A stretch of DNA of 64,000 nt, from positions 310,001-374,000 of the forward strand of contig OZ176053.1 in the NCBI GenBank assembly GCA_964247055.1. The letters run 5' to 3'. This DNA is from Paragordius varius. Lineage: Eukaryota > Animalia > Nematomorpha. A program made the position numbers and the translations under genes. Below are positions 2,468 through 59,302 of the stretch, piece by piece. Position 1 is the first letter of the stretch. Each line of letters starts with the position of its first letter. Below the pieces are notes generated by a model. That model did no database searches, was not told where the DNA came from, and saw only the letters and a list, made by a program, of their open reading frames with translations.

Positions 2468-2558
2468 AGATGATTCATTTTTCGTTTTTTTTGAAAGGAA
2501 AATCTTTCATTAATTTATAATATAATATAATTCAGCTAAAATTATATAAATTTATTAT

Positions 2559-2591
2559 GATATTTCGATTACTACAAGTAATCTTTGTCAA
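2559..2591 (-). ncRNA. Minimal hammerhead-ribozyme-like motif (Penelope-tail fragment) in the transposase leader
   Basis: Minus strand reads UUGACAA-A-GAUUACU-UGU-AGUAAUC-GAAA-UA-UC. About 75 bp (2527-2600) matches the Penelope-like tail at 41129-41200. Confidence 0.5.
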
Positions 2592-2934
2592 ACTTAAAAA
2601 ATATCATCGTTGAATTTACAACCTCTTTTTGTGTTCATATTTATAAACTACTATTAGTATAATAGATATATATTACCTTAATTTTCTCGAATAAACGTGT
2701 AAGGTACCGATTTGTGGTACCAATTTGTCTTTTAATCTAGAGATTTGTGGTATTAACTTGGCTTTTTGATAATGATGACAGTAGTAGTAGGAAGGAAAGT
2801 GCATAATCATTTAATTTAAAATTTATATAGATTTTAAAGATATTTAATGATAAAAAATTTAAATGGATAAAAAAATTTATTTGTATTAAAAATTTTTTTT
2901 TTATATGATCGTGAAAAAGCGGGACATTTTAAAA

Positions 2935-4860: not shown

Positions 4861-5072
4861 CGGTAAGGGTCGTTCAGTGAGGACAGTAACGGTTGCATCA
4901 TGCCTGTCTCATTTTCTGGACACCTTGATATGCGAGTCATATTTATTTATAAATAACATTGATGCTTAGAAGACCGTTATATTGTTGTTTGCTGCTACAC
5001 TCTTTTAATAAATATAAAAAATTTAGATATTAAATATAATATATTAACTATGGTTGAAACTCTATCAAACAT

Positions 5073-5190
5073 GTTACGACCATATCACGTTGAAAGCACC
5101 GGTTCCCTTCCGAACACCGAAGTTAAGCAACGTTGAGCCCGGTTAGTACTTGGATGGGTGACCGCCTGGGAATCCCGGGTGTCGTAACTT
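5073..5190 (+). rRNA. 5S rRNA: 5S rRNA gene
   Basis: Terminal stem GTTACGAC/GTCGTAAC is perfectly complementary. Internal AAGTTAAGC and GGTTAGTACTTGGATGGGTGACCGCCTGGGAA match eukaryotic 5S boxes. About 118 nt. Confidence 0.96.
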
Positions 5191-8503: not shown

Positions 8504-11500
8504 ATGTTAAACGCTTTGTCCAAATACGTTTCAGGGTACGTGACCAAATGTACATCATCAAATCAAAATGGCGGTTCTGGCCTATCGTCTGCCATGGTAG
8601 AACTACCCAAAAAAGCAGCCGATATTAATTTCCCTTCGCTTGTTCCGAAAGGTGAAATTACCGAAAACGATTTGGATAATGAATGGGTCCTCATAGCTCA
8701 AAAAAGTAAAAATTTAATTTAATTTTTTTTCCTAAGTGTGGAGAAAACTTTTGAACTTTTTTTGATACTTTTTATTTTACTACTATAATTAAATTTTTAA
8801 TTGCTTTACCATTAATAATTATAAATGTATTATATAATTGTTGTTGAAAAATTTAATTATAGTATCTATACCGCCGATACACAAATTTTCTGTCAAAGTA
8901 TATATAGTATAAATAATTGTGTAAAGTGTGTCATTCTAGTTTACCTCTCAATATCATCAAATAACTCGTATATACTATTTATTCATTCTTTTATAAAAAA
9001 ATTTCTACAAAATTTTATAAATATATATGAAAAATCTTGGATTTTTTAGGTTTCTGCCTGCAAATTATATTTAATAATCTGTATATAGCTGTAATATCCG
9101 AAATATATTTGTTAAGGGGGGGGGGGGGCTTTACTCTGCATGTAGGAGAGTTTTAATTAAACAAAAATGATTCAACAATAAATATAGTATAATGTATGTT
9201 AGATACCGCACCGACACAGATATTTAATATATACATGTTATTTATTTGGGTCGCTTTTTATTATTTGATATACCAAGTTGTGAGTTTGTATTTATAATTT
9301 TTTTCATATGCAAGTCTACGTAATGTTAATGTAATGTATTGCATCATCAATTTTGCAATGTGACACGATCCATGTTATGTTATTGTGTGTCTTTTCAAAA
9401 ATATTTACCATTAATCAAATATTTATCGTACATGAAAATTTATAATTTGGCACAAATAGTTGGTCAAACTTTTTTTTACGAAATACGAAAAAATTTTATG
9501 ATGAAAAATTATTCCCTCATTAATGCAAGTTTTTTATACTTGCTATGTACTGTACTATGCATAAGGCTGATTCATGATTGGCTATTTCGCATTTTTTTTT
9601 CTTAAAAATGATTGAAAAAAAAACGTAGCAATAGTTTTTTGGAAGCCTTATACCTATTTTGGGCCAAATTTATCTTTTATTTTTTATACATTCCCTCTTA
9701 TTTTCCAGTTTGCGTCATGCACCGCTCTTTTCTCTTCCCTTGTCTATTGTTAATGGTTTTTTTGTGTTTTGTTATGAATATATACGCGACTAGGCTAATT
9801 TTAATCATTTGTCGTCTTTGTATTAAAAAATATATTTGTGTTGGCACCTACCTCTCTTATATTAACTTGGGACTTATTACTAAGAAAAAAAAATAATTAA
9901 TTAAATTGTTATTGAAAAATGTTACATTGTATAAGCGGTACTACTTTAAATTTGAGATTTATGATTTTAACAATTTCTAATTACAAAGTTACATTCGATT
10001 GCATGATGAAATGCGGAAAATTGTATGAAATTTTGGAAAATATATAATGTTAAATTTTAATTTACCCATATCTATATATGTGTAGTAATAGCTTAAGGAG
10101 ATATGCAAATCGCAGAAATTGTAACTCATTAAGCCCATTGACGTCACAATAATAAAAGGATATGTAAACGAAAACATATATACTTAACTCATTATTATGT
10201 AAATTACTCAATAACAAAAAGATTTAAGTGTTAACTTATAAAATGATAAATACGTACTATTTATTATTTGCCTTAAACATTGTAAATAGTGTTGTTAGAA
10301 AGGTTGATTTAGTATATGTACATAAAAAATTGGATGTCGCTAAAACTTTAAAATTTACAAATGTGACAATTTTTTTAAAAAAAAGAATGATAAAAACCCA
10401 CAATAACAAGATCTATTATAGGCTTTTATGGTTTTTTAAATGGCTAAAATGGGATTTTCATGTTTGCCATGTATGAGATATGTCATTTTTTAATTGTACA
10501 TTGTACTTTTTTTTACATATAATATAACGAAAAATCTTATATACATGTCATTAAATCCCCATTTAACCATTTTATTACCGAATGGCCTATAATAGTCGTT
10601 AATGTAATATGATTCGAAATTAATCAGACGACTGTTTAATTTTATATTTTTTGACATGAAAATGAAATTGCTAACTTTCTTACGTTTTTTTAATTTTTAT
10701 ACTACGGTTAGTTTCGGTAGATAATATAATTTTTTGGTAAACAATTTTCTTTTATTTTTACATTAGGACCAATACCTCTACCCGAAGAAAATGATCAAAT
10801 TTATTTGGACCTAAACAAGGTAATATCTTGCCCGCCTTTATCTTCCACCACAGCGACAACAACAAAAGCAAACCACCAAAAACCAACTATTAGCTGTTCT
10901 AGCATGAACACCACTCCCTTACCGTGCAATAATATGTCCTACACTGCCTCTGGTCCTAAAACGGATAATACGACGGCACAACCCTTTTATCTTGTTACGG
11001 GGACTATGCATGGCCGTGACGGTTATGATGCAGAAAGTCAATCTGTCTTGGTTAACCGGAATAAACTTGTTACTATCCCGGTTAAAGAAAGCGCAGTTTC
11101 ATCCAACAATGATCATAAGACTACTACTATGTCGTCCAAAGACAAGAAAACTACACGCCATATCAAAGTAGGAAACAAGAAAAACGCTGCGAGCAAATTG
11201 CATAATTATTCCAATTTAGAGAAGCAAGTAGACGATGACACCGATGTACTAGATGATCCAATCGCTTCCGATTTTGACGACGGCGAAGATAGTGAATGGG
11301 ACGACGAATATAAGCAACAAAAAGTTTCGTCTGCTGCGACTTTACCGTCTGACAATGATGACAGTGATACATCGAGTTTTACAGCTGATGATGAATTTGG
11401 AAAGAAGAAAAGACTGACTAATAATAAAGTTAATTCCTCGACAACAGGTGTCGTTCCAGCAGCCTCTAAAATGATGGCCAAGTTTCATGATACCTGGGAC

Positions 11501-17900: not shown

Positions 17901-20900
17901 TTGAATTGTAAATGGTATAGATATATCAATTTTGTTTCCAAACTACAACAAGAAACTATACAATACAAATAAAATACAAACGGTAATAAAAGTTAGAGTG
18001 TGAAATTTTTATGTACACAGAGCTGTAAAAAAAGTCAAAAAACAACAAAAATAAGCATAGAATTCATTTTTAAAAAGCGCATAAACAATATTTTAGAAAA
18101 CCTTAAAAAGAACTGAAAATAAAAAAAAAGTTTTATGAGACTGATGGTATAATTAGCTTTTTTATAATGGGAAATTATCTCAAATCACATAAACAGATTA
18201 AAAGAATTTTAAAAAATATGATTTTACAAAATAAAATTACAGGGTTCCCTGATAAAGCTAATAATTTTTCACCTTATATTTTTTGTTTTAAAATGCATGT
18301 GTAAGGGAATAAATACAAAGTTTATCCTTAAAATATAATTTATTCTTTTTTTTGCATTACAAAAATATTTAATAAATCTAAAATTTAACAAAAAAGAATA
18401 ATAATGAATTTAAATAAATATATATTCAAACAAAAAAAACTAAATTTTTGTAAAAACCAATTTTTAAATTTTAAATAAATTATATAAATATAATTAATTA
18501 CAAAGCAATTGGGTAAGGTTTGTTGATTAACATTGATATAAACGTAATTATCATTCATTTCTGAGGAATGATAAATTTTGAGATGTGGAGTTAAGGAAAA
18601 TACGAAACATGAATCATTACCTAAATAAATAAAAATATATAAAAAATGATTTTTTTAAAAAAAATTATAAATTTTGAAAAAAATATATAATTGCGAATAT
18701 AAAGTAGTTTTTGGTATTTGAACAGTAAAAATTGAAAGACAAAATGCAAATATATAAAGACAAATTTTTTTTTCAAAAACCACTATACTTTTTTTATATA
18801 GTAAAAATTGAAAGACAAAATATAAAAATATAAAAAGACCAATATATTTTTTTAAAAGACACCCATACTTTTTAAAACTTTAATTTTTTGCTATATAAAA
18901 TATTTAATTACAATCGTAAACTACATAATTGATTGTGCTACCAATTTAGAATTCTATTTTATATTTTGAAGTTTAAAAAAATGAGTTTTATTTAAAAAAA
19001 TTAAGATTCAAAAAATATGGTTGTTTTAGAAAAATAATTGTCTTTATATTTTTACGTTTTGTCCCCCCATATAATTTCAATTTTTACTGTAATTCTTGGG
19101 GCCTATTTATGCTTATAATCTTTTGGTTCAAAAATTAAATTTCGATTCCAAAATTAATAGAAATTATTAATCAAATATAAAAACTGGTCATTACAAATTT
19201 TTCCAATTATTTATGAATATTTTAATGTAACCCCAAAAATTGTAGGAATTAAAATAAACCCTTAAAATATGCCATTCACAGTTCAAATTCACCCTAAAAA
19301 TAAATTATGTGTTTTCAAACTAATATAACTCTCCTTATTAATAGGAAATATATCTTTATGGGGCATCATAGTTTATTATTTTTTCAGTATTATTTTAATT
19401 TGAACATAATTTTTATTTTTTAAAAATATATAATAATATAGGTAATTTTTAATCTTAAAAAAAATATATTTTATGGGTGAATTTGAATTGTTCGTAGATG
19501 AATTTTATTTGTTCAAGGATGAATTTGAGTTGTTTTAAGATAAATTCGAATTATGTTATATAAAACCTATTCCTTTCAAGAAATAATATTTTTATACAGG
19601 TAAAAATCTCCTTTTAAATAAATTGCAGTCAGTAAAATGTTACATATGCCCGTTGTATAAATTATTTTTTTAAAAAAATTAGTTTAAATGAAATGTAAAC
19701 CCTAAATATTTACCATATCGCCTTCAAGTAATAAAATATTTTATTTTGTAATTATCTTTTACAGTAAATGTTGAAATTATACGGACAAAACGTAAAAATA
19801 TAAAGGCAAATATTGTTTTCTAAAAGACAACCAGACTATTTTAAATTCCTTTTTTTTTCAAATATTACTTATTGTTTTAGAGAAAATAAGATATACCATT
19901 TACAGTTCAAATTCATTCTTGAACAATTCAAATTCACCCTAAAAATAAATTATGTGTTTTCGAACTAATATAACTCATTATTAGTATAAAATATATCTTT
20001 ATGGCATAATTTATTTTTTATTATTTTAATTTATAACATAATTTTTATTTTTTAAAAATATATAATAATGTAGGTAATTTTTAATCCTAAAAAACATATA
20101 TTTTATGGGTGAATTTGAATTGTTTTATAGAAAAATTTGAATTGTTTTATGATAAATTTGGATTATGTTATATAAATACATCTTATTCCATTCAAGAAAT
20201 AATATATTTATACAGGTAAAAATCTCCTTTTAAATAAATTGCAGTCAGTAAAATATTACATATGCCCGTTGTTTAAATTTTTTAAAATTTTTTTTAAAAA
20301 AATATTCTAAATATTTACCATATCGCCTTCGAATAAATAAATATATTTTATATTTTAATTATCTTTTACAGTAAATGTTGAAATTATACGGACAAAACGT
20401 AAAATAAAAAGACAACCATACTATTTCAAATCCTTTTTTTTCAAATATTACTTATTATTTTAGATTGGAAAATAGGTAGATGTGTAATTTGTGAAAAATT
20501 GTGATCAAATAGTTTATTGTAGAAAAAAATTAAGGGATTTAAAAAGTATGATGGTTAGTTTTTTTTTATCAAAAAAAATACTTGTCTTTATATTTTTACG
20601 TTTTGTCCATAGTATTTAAATATTCGTTTATAAAAAAAGCAATTTTTTTTTATCAAAAGAAAAAAAAACCTTGGAAATGAGGATTAATGGTTAACTTTAC
20701 GGATGAAAATCCACCAAAAATATTGCCATTTTTTTCTTTAATCACGATTATGACTGGGCCAGCATAAACTAAAAAAAAATAAAATAAAATTGAACAAAAA
20801 AAAAACGAAATATACAAGCATTTCAAAAATTAAAAACTTACAACTACATTAATATTGCAATTATATAATTCATCTAAAATTATATATGAAATTGTTCTTT

Positions 20901-23900
20901 GTCAAACGTAAAAAATAAACTAAAAAAAGTAAAGTTGGAAACTATTTACAAATTAAATTGGAAATTTTTTTCAATATATATATACTTAACTTTAAACATT
21001 TTTAGATCAGGAAATAAAACATAAAATGTAAAAGAATTTATACAAATGTTAATTTAAAACTTGAATTACCTATCGTTCATTTTAAGTTGCAAGATAAAAA
21101 AAATTTAAATAATACTCATTTTTTTATTTAACTATAGGTTATTCAAAAAGCAAGGTTCACAAATTTGGACTTTATTAAATGAAAAATAAATATTAGACCA
21201 ACCTCCAATTTTCATATTTTGCCTTTATAAATTTAATTATAACTGTAACTCCAAATTTTTATTAATAAAAATTATATACCATTTACAATTCAAATTCACC
21301 CTTCCTAAAAATAAAAATTAAGTGTTTTCAAGCTAATATAACTCATCATGATTAATAATAAAATATTCTTCTGGCATAAATTATTATTTTTAATTTTAAA
21401 CGAAACTTTATTTTTTTAAAATACAAAAAAATAATAATTTTAATTTTAAAAAACACACATAATTAATTTTAGGTGAATTTAAACGCTGTAAATGGTATAA
21501 TTGACCATTATAAAATTCTTTTTTTAGATTTGAAAATATTTAATTTAATGATTAACCCTTTTTTAACCTCAAAAAAGGTTTTTTATAGTATGCATTTTAA
21601 TGGTACAGTAGTGTATGGAAAAAACAAATTTTTTTCCTTTCTTGTATTAGTTTGCTTATTTTATTCAATATTTTTTTTGTTTTTTTCCATACACTACTGC
21701 TGGATGTTGCTGCAAATTGCCCAACTATAGTATTGTGAAAAAAGCAACCATTAAAATGCATACTGTTAATCATAAAATTTTCTTCAAATATTTAATCAAT
21801 CTAATTTTTATAATTAAATTCAAAAACTTTGTTTTTCGATAATACTAAAAAAATTAAAATGCATACACACTGTAAAATTTATTTTTTTAATAATCTAAAA
21901 AATTAAAATGTATACTCTGTGAATCATCAAATATTTTTTACAATAATATTAATAATATTTGATATTAATCTAATTTTTATAATTAAATTCAAAAACTTTT
22001 TTTTCCGATAAAAAAATAAAAAAATTAAAAAATGTATACTGTAAATTACATAATTTTTTTTAATAATATTAATAATCCTCTTTGACTTAAAATTTTAGAT
22101 AAAACTTTTTTTTCGATAATAAAACTAAAAAATTAAAATGCATACTCTGTTATATATAAAATTTTTATAATATTAATAATAATGCTCTTAATCTTTATGA
22201 TTAAATTCAAAAACTTTTTTATAATATTAAATATTAAAATGCATACTGTTAATCATAAATTTTTTTTTAAATAATATTAATCTAATCTAATTTTTATAAC
22301 TAAATTCAAAACTTTTTTTTTATAATACTAAATATTAAAATGCAGTTATATATAAAATTTTTATAATATTAATAATAATGCTCTTAATCTTTATGTTTTA
22401 TTTCAAAAACTTGTTTTTCGAGATAACAATACTAAAAAAATTAAAAAGCATACACACTTAAAATTATAAAAAAAATTTAATAATATTAATAATGCTCTTA
22501 ATCTTTATTTTCTAATTCGCAAATATTTTCGATAATAAAAATAAAAAATTAAGTAATGTATATTGTATACTATAAATTACAAAAATTTTTTATTGATAAC
22601 AATTATCTTTAATTATATATAAAACTTTATTTTCGAAAATATTTGAGACAAACTTAAATAAATTAAATAATGTATACTATAAATTATAAAAAAATATTTA
22701 TTAATAATAATCATTCTTAATCTTTATTTTTTAATTCAAAAACTTTTTTTTCGATAATATTTAAAATAAAATGATACCAATATGCCTAGCAAGTCTAATA
22801 AAACTTTCCCCGTGAATCGTGGAGGCATATAGGAGGCGCCACACATTCCTATAATCAAGCGGGCAATGATTGTTAAGTGTTAATAGGTCTGAAATATCTA
22901 ACATTGTTTCAAATCGTGTCCAATCTACACTTTCACACAGCGGGATAATGGGAACAGCCATTAACTGGAAGGATTAAGGCAAAAAAATTGAAATTAAAAT
23001 TATACTACCTACTATGGACAAACCAGTGAAAATATAAAGACAAATATTTTTTTTTCTATACAGGCAACCAAACATATGTGTTATATATCATTTAGAGTTT
23101 AAATTCACCTTTGAATTCAAATTCACCCTTTAACAATTCAAATTTACCCTTTAACAATTTAAATTCGCCCTTGAACAATTCAAATTCACCCTTGAACAAT
23201 TCAATTCGCCCTTGAACATTTCAAATTCGGCATTGAATTCAAATTCACCCTCGAACAATTCAAATTCACCCTTGAACAATTCAAATTCGCCCTTAAATTC
23301 AAAGTCGCCCTCGAACAATTCGAATTCACCCTTAAACAATTCGAATTCCCCCTTTAACAATTTAAATTCCCCCTTTAACAATTTAAATTCGCCCTTAAAC
23401 AATTCAAAATCGCCCTCGAACAATCTAAATTCGCCCTTGAACAATTCAAATAATTCACCCTCAAACAATTCAAATTCACCCTTAAACAATTCAAATTCAC
23501 TCTTGAACAATTCAAATTATGTGTTTTCAAACTAATATTACTTGTTATTAGAATGAAATATATCTATATATCTATAGCATTGTTTATTATTTTTTCAGCA
23601 GTATTTTGATTTAAAACCAAATTTTATTTTTCAAAAATATATAATGATATAGATAATTTTTAATCTAAAAAAAATAATTTATTTGAGGGTGAATATGACT
23701 TGTAAATGGTTTATATTAATTATTTTAAATATAACTCATAGTTTAAAATTGTAAAGTATGAAATAAAGATATAATATAGGTTACACAATCAATTATATAT
23801 TTTACAATTGTAATTAAATTATTAAAGGATAAATTAAGGTCTAAAAAAGTATGGGGTTGTCTTTTGAAAAAAATTTTTGTCTTTATATTTTTATGTTTTT

Positions 23901-38977: not shown

Positions 38978-41900
38978 TTATTTTTTCTGTTTTTGGATTT
39001 GTTGTGCCGCATCTACAAAATCCAAAGATGGTTTACTAAAATCAAACAGGTCTGGATGTAAAATATCTTCGGGCAAAGATTCACCCACGTGATCATCCGC
39101 GTAATAGGTTGGGAATGGAGGGGCATTCTTTCATTATAATAAAAAAATTTAAAATGAGAATTTTGAAATAGAAATTTGCAAAAATATAAAGACAAATATT
39201 TCTTTTCAAAAGACAACCATATTTTCAGAAATCTTATATAAATGATGGTGTTATCAATTGCAATTATATTTCAAAAAAATTTGATAGATAAAACAATGAG
39301 TTATATGTTAAAAATCATCTTTATAAAAGTACAGCAGTTTTTTAAATAGGAAAAATTATAAAAGTATGGTTGTGTTTAAAAAATATTTTTCTTTATGTTT
39401 TTACGTTTTGACCTGTATAATATCGATATTTACATACTGTATTATCACAATCTTTTACTTTCAAAAAAAACATAATTTAATTTTCAAATTAATAACCCTT
39501 TCTCAATTTAAACTTAATTTAAAATCAAAAAAAAATCCGACCTCTTTTTCCTTTATTCTCCGGTGAGTGGCTCTACTATCAAAAACTTTAACGAAAGAAT
39601 TGATAGGTCCTGGGACGGCATAACCATGAACATACATTACATTATGTTTCGTATTTATGCGCCAAATCTATAAAACAATAACAAAAAAAGTTTTTTAAAA
39701 AAATCCCTAAAAAATTATAAAGACTAAAACAATTCTTTAAAAAATAAAATTAAAACTGTAAAAAATATATTATAGAAATGATATAATAAAGGTTTACTAT
39801 TTACAGTAAAATTAACCCTCAAACAATTCAAATTAACCCACAAACAAATCAAAGAATTCACCCTAAAATAAATAACGTGTATTTTAAAGTTAAAAATTAC
39901 CTATTCCTTATATTCTTAAAAAAATTAATTTTTATTTAAAATTATTATTATAATACCCAAAAAATGATAAACTATGCCATATGAATATATTTTATTATAT
40001 TAATGATGATGAGTTATATTAGCCGCCCGAAAACACATATAATTTATTTTTAGGGGGTGAAGAATTTGAATTGTTCAAGAGTGAATTTGAATTGTAAATG
40101 GTATATCTTGCAAATTTTATGGAAATTTAATCAAAAAAACTAATATTTTTACGTATAATTCAATTTTTTAGCTTGTATTAGCTATGGCCCCTTAAGTGTG
40201 GAAAATTCCGGTGGGTGGGAATTATTAAATATTTCATTTATATTTTAAGTGTACAAGATTGGAAAAACTACTACTAATTATTTTAACATTTTTTTTAATT
40301 CATTGGCCTCTTTAAAATATTCGGAAAGATATTTATTTAAAAATTTGTTTTAAGAAATAAATTTTACTTTGATTTCTTAAAATTTTTCGATTAAAATTTT
40401 TCCCTACAGATAAATTTTAGAGGGCGGCCTTGGACCCACCCTTACCTGAAACATTTTAAGGTTATAGCTAAATTAAATATAATTAATTTATTTATTATTA
40501 ATGCTGATAAAAGTAAATAAGTGTACTTCTCATAAATAATGTCAATATAATAAAAAGTCTACACCACTAAAATTAAATATTTATAAAATATCACTTTTTT
40601 TATCCAAAAAAACTAAAAATTTGTAATTTTTTTTTTGAAAACTTTTTAGAGCTCAAAAGGACATTTTGAATATGTCAAAAACCATAAAATTTTACCCTAA
40701 GACATCGGGCACATCGCGTTTTTCCACCCATCAAACCAGCCATACGAGTTCCTTTCATAACGGTTCCAGGACTCTAAATAATTAAAAGTTTAGTATTTTT
40801 GAAAAAAAAAACAGTTAAAAAAGAATTATTTTTTCAAAAAAAATGCATAATTTTATAATAAGGAAACACACATATCATAAATAAAATTGTTAAAGAATAT
40901 ATCAATGAGTCAAACAGGTGTGTGTCCATGTATTGATTTTATACTACTAATTAATTTCATTTTAAAATTTGATTAAGGCATGAAAAACTAAAATTTCTAA
41001 GTATACAGCATTTATTTATTAGAAAGACAGAGAACAACTTATAAATTATACCAAAATACTTATTGTAATAATATCTTACATATCGGATATTGTTTACGCT
41101 GAAGTGTGATTGTATTATTATATATGGAATAATTCAGCAAAAATATATATATTTATTATAATATTTCGATTACTACAAGTAATCTTTGTCAAACGTAAAA
41201 ATAAAATAAAAATATAAACTAAAATTTAAATTATAAAGTAAAAATATTAAATGAGATATGAAACTAAAAAAACATGTGTGTATTGTTAATAAGAAAAAAA
41301 TTTGTAATGTTATTAATATTGTTAAGGTCTTTCTTTCTATTCATTATATTCCCTTCTTTGTTAATATAAAAACTTTCTTTCAATATTCTTTTTGTTCTGT
41401 TTTCCTCTGTATCGACAACTTCGGCATCCCAGTTTATTTTATGTTTACATTTAAAGGCATGATATGCCAAAGCCGAATCATTGGTTTTATTCTTGCTAAC
41501 TGCCGTTTTATGTTCTTTATTAACAATACACACATGTTTTTTTAGTTTCATATCTCATTAAATATTTTTACTTTATAATTTAAATTTTAGTTTATATTTT
41601 TATTTTATTTTTACGTTTGACAAAGATTACTTGTAGTAATCGAAATATTATAATAAATTCATATTATTTTTGCTGAATTATTCCATATCTTACATATCAT
41701 TGAGAGAAAATAATTAAATTTATAAAATTTTCACCACAAATTAGTAAGTTTGTGGCAAGATGTGCCCAACTTTAAACGATATATTAGGAATTAAATTAGG
41801 GCCTTATTTAAATATAAAAAAATGCATCATAATTTTATTAAAAAAGTTAATTATGAGGAAATCAGGGCACAAAATAAAAAAAGTTCTAATGAAACCCCAG

Positions 41901-42950
41901 TTATAAATATAAGTATAACTTTCATAAAAGCAAAGGAAAAATCCAAATTTTTTTTCAAAAAAAATCTCTAAAATAGACTTTAGGAGGTAATACAATATGA
42001 GACGGTCTTCTGCTCTAAAAACCCCAATTATAAATAAGTATAACTTTATAAGCAAAGGAAAAATCCAAATTTTATAAAAAAACTCTAAAACAGACTTTAG
42101 GAGGTAATACAATATATGAAGTTTTCCTGAAACCCCAATTATTAATATAAGTATAAATAACTTTCATAAAAGCAAAAAAAATCCATTTTTTTAAAAAAAT
42201 CTTTAAAATAGACTTTAGCAGTTCCACGTTTCCCGCCCCCAAAGGATCCTGGTCTCCGATGGTTTTTTGTGTTTCCTCGACCCTCGCCTGGGCCCCCGGC
42301 GAAACCCCAACGTGTCATAACACCTTGAAATCCATGGAATATTCTAGATTATGTTTGAAAAAGCAACAGAAGAAAGATAAAATTTAGCATTTCTCACTTA
42401 AACCCACCAAAAAAAGATTATTATAAAACACTTTATTTCAAATTAAATAATATACCTCGTACATCAAGGTAGGGGGGGGGGAAATTTCAACATAATTGCT
42501 AATTTAAAATAAGGGTGTGTCAAGCACAAATGGTGACTTAAACTGTGATTGCCGAAAAATATACTATTAACAGTTCAAATTCACCCTTGAATAATTCAAA
42601 ATCACCCTTGAATAATTTAAAATCACCCTTGAACAATTCGAATTTACCCTTGAACAATTCAAATTCACCCTTGATCCATTCAAATTCACCACGATTCAAA
42701 ATCACCCTTGATCACTTCTAATTAACCCTTGAACAATTCAAAATCACCCTGTGCTTTTTAGGGTTAAAATTTACCTATATTTTTTGCATATTTTAAAAAA
42801 ATAAAATTTTGCTTATAATTAAAATAATACAAGAATAATAAATTACCATAAAGTTATATTAGCCCGAAAACACATAATTTATTTTTAGGGTGAATTTGAA
42901 TTGTTCGAGGGTGAATTTGAATTGTTTAAGAATGAATTTGAATTGCAAAT

Positions 42951-57100: not shown

Positions 57101-59302
57101 CCTTTAGTTAAATCAGCGCGCCATTCGGCATCCAAGATGGGGTAAGCAAAAACCGAACCCGAGCCCACGCTAAACAGGTGATGTTTAAGGCGGGAAGCAT
57201 CATTGTCCACATAGTATATACTCGGTCCCTTTGTAAGAAAAAAAAATTTTTTTTAACCATAAAACATTCAATTTTCAATGTCAAACAAAAGTAAAATTAT
57301 TACATTTCCAATATTATACTATATAACATTCAATTTTTCAATCAATCAAAAGTAAACTTATTACATTTACAATATTTTTTAAAAGTAACATTCAATTTTC
57401 AATATTTCAATTAATCAAAAGTAAAATTATTACAATCAAACGCAACAATTGAAAAAATTTTGTCCACATAGTATATACTTGGTCCCTTTGTTTTGAAATG
57501 ACAAGAAAAAAAAATTTTTTTTAACCATAAAACTTTTAATTTTTCAATATCAAAAGTAACATTTTTACATTTTACAATATTATACCATATAACATTCAAT
57601 TTTCAATATCAATCAAAAGCAATATTATTACATTTACAATATTATACCATATAACATTCAATTTTTAGTCAATGTCAAAAGTTAGATTATTACAATCAAG
57701 CGCAACAACCGAAAAAATTTTGTCCACATAGTATATACTCGGTCCCTTGGTTTGATATCAAAATAAAAAAATTTAAACCATATACAATCATGTATGTTTA
57801 GAATTGTCAAACATACTACGTTTTTCATTGATTTTACTTTGTTTTTAATTTTCATGATGTTGGTTTGATATGTCGTCAACGTTCAACATGCGCGCGCATT
57901 TTTAGCAGGCCTCAATTAAAAACAAAGTAAAATCAATTAAAAAGGTATGTTGGACAATTTTAAACATACATGAGTGGAACATTCAATTTTCAGTCAAAAG
58001 TAACATTTTTTTTCAAATGCCAAACGCAACAGTTGAAAGTGTTTTGTATTGTATTATTATTGCAATTATAATATGAATTTATTGGGTGAATTTTTGATTA
58101 CTATTTTAGTTGATTATTATTTTAGTTTATATTTTAATTGCATTTTTTTACGTTTGACAAAGAATACTAATTAGTAGTAACCAAAAATTCACCCAATAAA
58201 TTCATATAATTTTAGTTGAATTATAATTAACTGCAATAATAAAACTGAAAAAAAAGTTGTGTTTAGATAAAAAATGTTGCATTTGACTGAAAAATATTAA
58301 TTCTTCTTTAGAATATTTATAATTCCTCTTTAAAATAGTAAATAGTAAATTAAAATATTTATAAAAGATTAAATTCCATAAAAAGGATAATATATGTAAA
58401 GTAAATACAGGTAAACTGTAAAAACTTAAAGAAAATATTATTTTTCATAACTATAATTTTTAAAACTGTCATTTTTTTAAACATCAATTTTACTATTGTT
58501 TTTGGTGGAAAACCAAGGATTAGATATGTACATTTGTGATACAATCATTTATATATTTTAAAATTGTAAAATAGTCTATGTAATGAAAAATTAAAGTTTA
58601 AAAATATATATCTGTAGTTTAAAAAATATTTGTCGTCTTGTTTTTATGTTTTGTCGATATATAAATTCAATTTTTACTTTATATATATACCATTTGCACT
58701 TCAACAGTGTCCTTGAACACTTCAAGTTGGTCCTTAAACAGTTCAAGTTGGTCCTTGAACACTTCTTGAACAATTCAAGTTGGTCCTTAAAATTTATAAA
58801 TTTTAATTTAACCATAATTTTTGCATTTATTTTTTTATTTTATTATTTATTAACATAATTTTCTTTATTTATTATATATTATTCATTTAAAAATAAAATT
58901 TTTAATTGAAAAACCACTTTTTTGTTTCAAACTATTTTTTTCAATTAATCAAAATTATTGACTTTTAACTGTTTTTGAGGAAAAACTTTAATTAATAACC
59001 CAGAAAACTTATATATTTTTTAATTTCGTGTTAAAATCTTATATATATCCAAAATTATTTTTAGAAATTAATAAAGATATACGGTTTCTCAAAGATTAAA
59101 AGTTAATATCGATTATAAAAATTATGTTAAATAATAGAAAATAAGTTAAAAACAATAAAATAGATGAATTTATTTACGATTTAATTGATATAAGTTAAAA
59201 CAAAACAAAAAAGTCAAAGGACCAACTTGAACTGTTCAGGGACCAACTTGAACTGTTCAAGGACCAACTTGAAGTGTTCAAGGACACTCTTGAAGTGCAA
59301 AT

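Follow-up and report, generated by a model that had tools for sequence, protein, structure and literature searches.

A minimal hammerhead motif with a U3-A8 core pair in a head-to-head Penelope-like insertion of Paragordius varius

What does a short hammerhead-like motif represent when it occurs on both strands of a small insertion and departs from the usual hammerhead core? This question is raised by a Penelope-like element (PLE) of 604 bp in the nematomorph Paragordius varius. The insertion is located at positions 41085-41688 of the window, i.e. the whole stretch of 64,000 nucleotides that was analysed (GenBank assembly GCA_964247055.1, contig OZ176053.1, positions 310,001 to 374,000, forward strand). 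A sequence-only reading of this DNA had proposed a PLE hammerhead ribozyme in which the core pair between positions 3 and 8, normally C3-G8, is changed to U3-A8. We consider it probable that the locus is a single PLE insertion, dead on arrival, in which two 5'-truncated copies meet head to head, with a PLE-class minimal type-I hammerhead in the 3' untranslated region (UTR) of each. The hammerhead reading is well supported by the comparison of families presented below, while catalysis is only predicted.

The motifs and remnants in the window are as follows, where family A is the PLE family of the insertion and R1 is a covariance model built from sequences of families A and E.

41617-41649, plus strand: minimal type-I hammerhead motif, from U3 (41617) to U17 (41649); exact pattern match, R1 score 74.3 bits over 41611-41663
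41160-41192, minus strand: minimal type-I hammerhead motif, from U3 (41192) to U17 (41160); exact match, R1 score 74.9 bits over 41146-41198
2530-2603, minus strand: solo family-A tail with strong 5' truncation, beginning just 5' of the hammerhead, with C at H17; motif at 2559-2591
20867-20911, minus strand: decayed family-A-like tail from which helix II and GAAA are deleted; R1 match
58050-58230, plus strand: inverted pair of an older subfamily; motif at 58148-58206, its helix II degenerate and its G12 replaced by A, partner at about 58050-58110

From 5' to 3', the motif consists of UUGACAA, an unpaired A, helix II (GAUUACU/AGUAAUC) with the loop UGU, GAA, AUAU and U17. U3-A8 stands in place of C3-G8, a Watson-Crick pair that it replaces isosterically. 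The other invariant core bases are all present, namely U4, G5, A6, A9, G12, A13, A14, A15.1-U16.1 and H17. Helix II comprises 7 bp and is closed by G10.1-C11.1, with one unpaired A after A9. Helix III is reduced to 1 bp (A15.1 and U16.1 around a 2-nt loop) within the 4-nt palindrome AUAU. Stem I had been described as weak, and on parsing it indeed has 2 contiguous pairs in family A (U-A and G.U), with a possible UUUAUU/AAUAAA extension past a bulge. Cleavage is predicted between 41649 and 41650 on the plus strand, 39 nt upstream of the tail-less end of the element, and between 41160 and 41159 on the minus strand. The poly(A) signal AAUAAA is found at 41653-41658, 3 nt past the predicted plus-strand site. 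Both in the window and in the full-length element L031 described below, the motif lies about 70 nt downstream of the stop of an open reading frame (ORF) on the same strand. The 33-nt string from U3 to U17 shows no mismatch at 41617-41649 and 41160-41192 and one mismatch (U17 to C) at 2559-2591 (minus strand), so that of three copies reported as identical two are exact and the third still satisfies H17. None of 100 shuffles of the window matched the 33-nt motif. The related remnants announced near 20897 and 58154 were likewise found, at 20867-20911 (minus strand) and 58148-58206 (plus strand).

The inverted pseudo-long terminal repeat (pseudo-LTR) structure, the tail of 30-40 bp at one end and the target-site duplication by which PLEs are recognised are all found at this locus. 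Its parts are the following.

41075-41084, no strand: left copy of the target-site duplication CTTACATATC, same letters as 41689-41698
41085-41121, minus strand: PLE tail of 37 nt, an AC-rich 3' extension on the left arm only, prolonging the minus-strand UTR past the inverted repeat
41122-41292, minus strand: 3' end of the ORF and 3' UTR, left arm of the inverted repeat (arm pairing; alignment with 27 family UTRs)
41264-41516, minus strand: 5'-truncated ORF fragment with stop codon, C-terminal part of a GIY-YIG endonuclease (ORF listing; match to the full ORF)
41517-41688, plus strand: second copy, inverted and more strongly 5' truncated, with ORF end and 3' UTR and without the tail (arm pairing; UTR alignment)
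41689-41698, no strand: right copy of the target-site duplication CTTACATATC, same letters as 41075-41084

The insertion is bracketed by a perfect 10-bp duplication of an AT-rich target; the window as a whole has 25% G+C. The span originally given, 41085-41698, holds for the element up to 41688; the last 10 nt of that span, 41689-41698, belong to the duplication as its right copy. The two arms are complementary at 97% over 154 nt (41139-41292 with 41517-41670) and at 100% over 24 nt (41122-41145 with 41665-41688). The 224 nt between the arms run, on the minus strand, into the left arm as one ORF ending at 41264. In a tblastn-type search this fragment aligns to amino acids 644-740 of the 743-amino-acid family ORF with 80% identity, which bears out the placement of the motif just downstream of a GIY-YIG C-terminus. 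The two copies are joined head to head, and both outer ends are 3' ends of the element. In the DNA search of the genome the internal junction of 41085-41688 is spanned by the self-match only and is thus unique to the locus. The tail extension, up to ...GCGTAAACAATATCC, is present on exactly one arm in eight of eight inverted family-A pairs, i.e. the window pair and those at C5:5846750/5850100, C6:305621/309275, C2:3659057/3659579, C1:14541198/14543829, C3:3779711/3782020, C1:4914212/4917339 and C3:12689326/12690480. In all eight the tail measures 33-37 nt; in some pairs it is borne by the longer copy, in others by the shorter one.

Is this motif peculiar to one truncated copy? At the DNA level, the element has at least 79 matches in the genome searched (110 Mb, 44 contigs). 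Within 3 mismatches the hammerhead string gives 330 matches and its reversed control gives 0; exact copies number more than 100, some of them adjoining intact ORFs. A full-length element was also recovered. This element, L031 (contig 6), has an intact 743-amino-acid reverse transcriptase (RT)/GIY-YIG ORF without stops and carries the UUGACAA-A motif in both tails; the ORF is preceded by an inverted 5'-truncated copy, with arms 99-100% identical. Intact members would have carried CUGANGA if the window copy were merely decayed; L031 and the more than 100 exact copies have UUGACAA instead. The window motif is not a decayed version, since the same core stands beside an intact ORF and in 330 near-identical copies. 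On the full-length ORF, Pfam GIY-YIG is matched at amino acids 627-707 with an E value of 5e-4, slightly below the curated cut-off. The ORF has 77 homologues with RVT_1, DUF8422 and HTH_animal, some of which also have GIY-YIG. No close relative of the family-A ORF emerged from a protein word search, the best foreign match showing 31-35% identity. [quoted passage not shown] When family A was compared with older decayed lineages, the hammerhead block was no more clearly conserved than its flanks (82-92% for the block, 80-85% for the ORF). Five family-A hammerheads (G000:C4:6987831, 7035093, 7082007, 7127454 and 7175099) lie about 47 kb apart, a spacing suggestive of a large segmental repeat in tandem array that includes a PLE copy.

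The hammerhead reading itself is carried by the comparison with other PLE families. The architecture recurs in at least 12 further PLE-tail families of the genome, whose helix I and II sequences differ. Families B to E were found through their ORFs, in a six-frame search with the family-A ORF, and not through the motif. They are listed here with their amino acid identity to family A, core, extra base, helix II, helix III palindrome with position 17, and helix I.

Family B: 65% identity; CCGAAGA; extra A; GUUAGA/UCUAAC; AAUU-C; UUAAU/AUUAA
Family C: 40% identity; UUGAAAA; extra A; GAUAC/GUAUC; AAUU-U; AUCCA/UGGAU
Family D: distant from family A; CUGAUGA; extra U; GCC/GGC; AAUU-U; ACUC/GAGU
Family E: 34% identity; GUGAUCA; extra A; GAUCAUG/CAUGGUC; AUAU-A; 2-3 bp

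Further U3-A8 families were found by pattern, with GACUUU/AAAGUC, GGAUC/GAUCC, GAGUGA/UCACUC or GUUUA/UAAAC as helix II. Two distant foreign PLEs (31-35% amino acid identity) have CUGAAGA-N-helix II-GAA-ACGU-U with a helix I of 5 bp, and at a third foreign locus (L082) the descriptor applied found no minimal hammerhead. The MAFFT alignment of the families is not structural, and the motifs were parsed by a custom script instead. G10.1-C11.1 is present in all 14 families compared; in those detected by pattern, the search itself required this outer helix II pair and the 3-8 pair, a circularity that does not affect families A to E or the two foreign loci. At 10.2/11.2 and 10.3/11.3, four or five types of pair occur. 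Position 17 is U, A or C in the 14 families, never G, and a helix III palindrome (AAUU, AUAU or ACGU) is found in 13 of them. Helix I, which measures 3-5 bp outside family A, pairs at its positions 1-4 in 40 of 56 cells over the 14 families, against 23.8 ± 3.3 with partners shuffled between families; none of 2000 shuffles reached 40. The interpretation as a PLE hammerhead is upheld by the location in a PLE, by the core bases with the exception of the covarying 3-8 pair, and by an architecture common to other families. AAUAAA occurs 3-25 nt 3' of the hammerhead in all five families A to E, and in family A it overlaps the 3' strand of helix I. Given this position 3' of the predicted site, cleavage would take off any poly(A) tail added downstream. 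Another group of tails, family F (L065-L069, L079 and L080; e.g. L079:736-809), has CUGAGGA-C-GGACA...UGUCC-GAAA followed by UUCGAA or the palindrome UUCGCGAA, the palindrome being maintained through a CG insertion. The helix III register of minimal hammerheads could not be matched to these tails.

How does the 3-8 pair behave over the whole genome? R1 matched the family-A clade only and left families B to D at noise level; for this reason the census relied on IUPAC patterns with reversed controls. The descriptor was N3-U-G-A-N-N8-A-N-G-N{7,19}-C-GAAA-WW-U-H, in which the 3-8 state was varied.

U-A: 405 matches (reversed control 49)
C-G: 123 matches (reversed control 2)
G-C: 20 matches, 14 of them family E (reversed control 3)
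A-U: 30 matches (reversed control 23)
U.G: 29 matches, scattered single copies only (reversed control 11)
C.A: 39 matches (reversed control 17)

U-A is the commonest state in this genome. The pair moves among the Watson-Crick states U-A, C-G and G-C, and A-U and U.G are at background level. The G3-C8 core of family E (GUGAUCA-A-GAUCAUG/CAUGGUC-GAA-AUAU-A) is found at L070:269-342 (G000:C1:8514158-8514231) and at 13 other loci. Within this family, helix II shows a change from G.U to A-U together with a compensatory change from G-C to A-U. Two groups have unusual cores. In family B, C4 replaces U4 (CCGAAGA) in about 42 copies, some of them beside intact ORFs (example loci L040:3670-3743, L041, L045, L074, L075 and L077); only two copies of a canonical CUGAAGA version exist in the genome. 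A C3.A8 family (family N) of about 13 copies has CUGAAAA-A-GGUUAUA/UAUAACC-GAA-AAUU-A with a 4-bp helix I, UAUC/GAUA (L104-L107, e.g. G000:C7:6929988-6930021). In the four copies of it that were fetched, no PLE ORF was present upstream on the motif strand. Canonical-core motifs of the form CUGACGA-C-GG...CC-GAA-AAAU-C recur 2-10 kb from several contig ends (C1:3393-3423, C2:3536-3566, C5:2600-2630, C7:2437-2467 and 8869-8899, C3:14410914-14417111, C4:14187777-14194246), which suggests telomere-associated PLE-type elements. Elsewhere in the window, a 5S rRNA gene is located at 5072-5190 (plus strand, 116.6 bits), and tandem repeats occur to the right of the insertion at 41892-42218 (period 117 nt, 2.7 copies) and 42569-42750 (21 nt, 8.9 copies).

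The window motif is an example of a hammerhead class described in 2014, in a textbook PLE insertion. The minimal hammerhead ribozymes of PLEs were defined by a helix II of 7-8 bp, a short helix I, G10.1-C11.1 and palindromic positions 15.2-16.2, with predicted dimeric action and low in vitro activity (Cervera & de la Peña 2014, PMC4209133). The same study reported an unpaired base between A9 and G10.1, opposite-strand motif pairs 100-700 bp apart, and a U3-A8 covariant in the Cercyon PLEs of Schistosoma mansoni, with about 1,300 hits that its first descriptor had overlooked. The novelty implied for U3-A8 does not hold, nor does that of the additional base 3' of A9, the mini helix III with its palindrome or the opposite-strand pairs, as all four are in PMC4209133. 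Full-text literature searches on natural hammerhead 3-8 covariation returned U3-A8 alone, and in that paper only. The present motif shares with those of PMC4209133 the type-I topology, the location in the pseudo-LTR and tail, the 7-bp helix II closed by G10.1-C11.1, the short helix I, the single unpaired nucleotide between A9 and G10.1, the 1-bp helix III in a 4-nt palindrome, U3-A8, and the occurrence of many solo copies and close opposite-strand pairs. It differs in host genome and PLE family (best foreign protein 31-35% identical) and in its helix III palindromes, which are all A/U here (AUAU, AAUU) and not ACGU or CG-containing. U3-A8 is here the majority state over several families and no mere side variant. 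In the Anolis Poseidon element the hammerhead overlaps the ORF start, whereas here it lies wholly in the 3' UTR, about 70 nt past the stop, and in family A AAUAAA follows it within 3-10 nt. Dimer-dependent type-I hammerheads also occur in newt satellite 2 and schistosome Sm-alpha repeats, where the CUGANGA core is canonical, the loops make tertiary contacts with each other and sense copies stand in tandem. Common to these and the present motif is an unstable helix III with palindromic loop, implying activity as a dimer; here, however, no tertiary contacts are evident and the copies are inverted.

How could such an insertion arise? An optional tail of 30-40 bp is a PLE signature (Craig et al. 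2021, PMC8557442; Frangieh et al. 2024, PMC11167929). In vitro, a PLE protein acts on both DNA strands, cutting and extending them, and two adjacent internal RT start sites lie in an AC-rich stem-loop, the sequence between them being the tail; cleavage is partly restored in the C3G/G8C double mutant (Frangieh et al. 2024, PMC11167929). The window locus fits that work: the AC-rich tail of 37 nt occurs on a single arm, the duplication measures 10 bp, and the 3' ends of both copies point outwards. We propose that both strands of a staggered break were nicked in one insertion event, each priming reverse transcription, and that synthesis from each began at one or the other of the two start sites inside the PLE RNA. 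Such double-primed insertion, which matches the in vitro behaviour reported for a PLE, would yield the head-to-head structure and the one-sided tail. In active family members, two copies may pair via the helix III palindrome, in tandem transcripts or in a ribonucleoprotein dimer, and the hammerhead would fold only upon this pairing. The element's own protein probably assists folding, as helices I and III are very weak in family A. The paired copies would then cleave after U17 and thereby trim the element RNA from read-through transcripts. The template that was reverse-transcribed would have been uncut at its 3' hammerhead, because genomic copies run through the predicted cleavage site; in vitro, too, unprocessed RNA serves as the substrate (PMC11167929). 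The window copy is a relic without a role of its own. No ribozyme function is expected at this locus, since there is one sense hammerhead per strand and a transcript would form a hairpin of about 170 bp.

Several observations weigh against a motif that cleaves. The two helices flanking the site are weak, helix I with 2 bp and the dimer helix III with four A-U pairs. In the minimum-free-energy fold of family-A RNA, helix II is present and the three-way junction is absent; with RNAfold and RNAcofold, helix II forms in all families and the junction in C and D only, the cofolded dimers using other AU-rich pairings. The genomic copies are all continuous across the predicted site. The element sequence was found in none of the contigs of RNA-labelled public runs. 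The Rfam hammerhead models (Hammerhead_1, _3, _II, HH9 and HH10) gave no match even at E <= 10, which carries little weight: canonical-core minimal hammerheads of the same genome and of foreign PLEs are likewise unmatched, because the Rfam models do not cover this class. In vitro, published PLE minimal hammerheads show low cleavage, and hammerhead mutants remain competent for insertion. Finally, the C4 family, with intact ORFs, and the C3.A8 family have been amplified, so catalytic competence may not be needed for mobility.

Alternatively, the motif may derive from a hammerhead but no longer cleave in this lineage, being kept as a structured RNA handle in the 3' tail, its core retained for the fold rather than for catalysis. 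Such a handle could bind the PLE protein, position the initiation of RT or dimerise the RNA. This agrees with the report that a PLE hammerhead requires protein and that its mutants leave insertion unimpaired in vitro (PMC11167929), with the very low activity of minimal hammerheads, with the very weak helices I and III of family A, with the continued amplification of families with C4 and C3.A8 cores, and with the lack of any genomic copy cut at the predicted site. Nevertheless, we regard it as unlikely. G5, A6, A9, G12, A13, A14, A15.1-U16.1 and a non-G base at position 17 are kept in at least 12 families with otherwise unrelated helices, and the 3-8 pair shifts almost only between Watson-Crick states, A-U and U.G being at background. 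This is the pattern predicted by selection on a catalytic core. A plain protein-binding hairpin, moreover, would need neither H17 nor the GAAA junction.

Instead of a truncated autonomous PLE, the locus might be a non-autonomous element of retrozyme type, circulating as a small circular RNA. Hammerhead elements without ORF and short inverted pairs are common in the genome, and a 2026 preprint ties animal retrozymes to the pseudo-LTRs of PLEs. However, the centre of the copy is colinear with part of the family-A ORF and UTR, no other locus has the internal junction, and the hammerheads are on opposite strands, so that no transcript has two sense copies from which a unit could be excised. This explanation is therefore very improbable. 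As for a decayed canonical hammerhead or a chance likeness in AT-rich DNA, the 25% G+C of the window and the background of loose descriptors (49 matches for the reversed U-A control) might favour it, but it can be practically dismissed, being refuted by the shuffles, by the 330 near-identical copies against 0 in the control, by the identical motif beside an intact ORF and by the architecture conserved in independent PLE families.

With the favoured explanation, i.e. a dead PLE insertion with a PLE-class hammerhead in each copy, the locus is an ordinary one and no effect on the host is expected. What it leads to concerns the genome and the PLE family. Most hammerhead motifs of this genome escape CUGANGA descriptors and Rfam models (405 U3-A8 matches versus 123 canonical), from which it follows that PLE tails and ribozymes will be under-called in AT-rich genomes. 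The covariation of the 3-8 pair by family, with U-A, C-G and G-C and not A-U or U.G, independently supports, from natural sequences, the C3-G8 Watson-Crick pair in the active fold. The C4 and C3.A8 families are natural constructs that bear on whether PLE hammerheads must cleave. More tentatively, and with slightly less than even confidence, the core of the PLE hammerheads may have been remodelled as a whole in this genome of 25% G+C, as would be indicated by the U3-A8 majority (about 350 net versus about 120 canonical), the A/U helix III palindromes and the amplification of G3-C8, C4 and C3.A8 families. If this is true, the genome would be a natural mutational scan that either widens the sequence space of active hammerheads or shows that PLE mobility is independent of catalysis.

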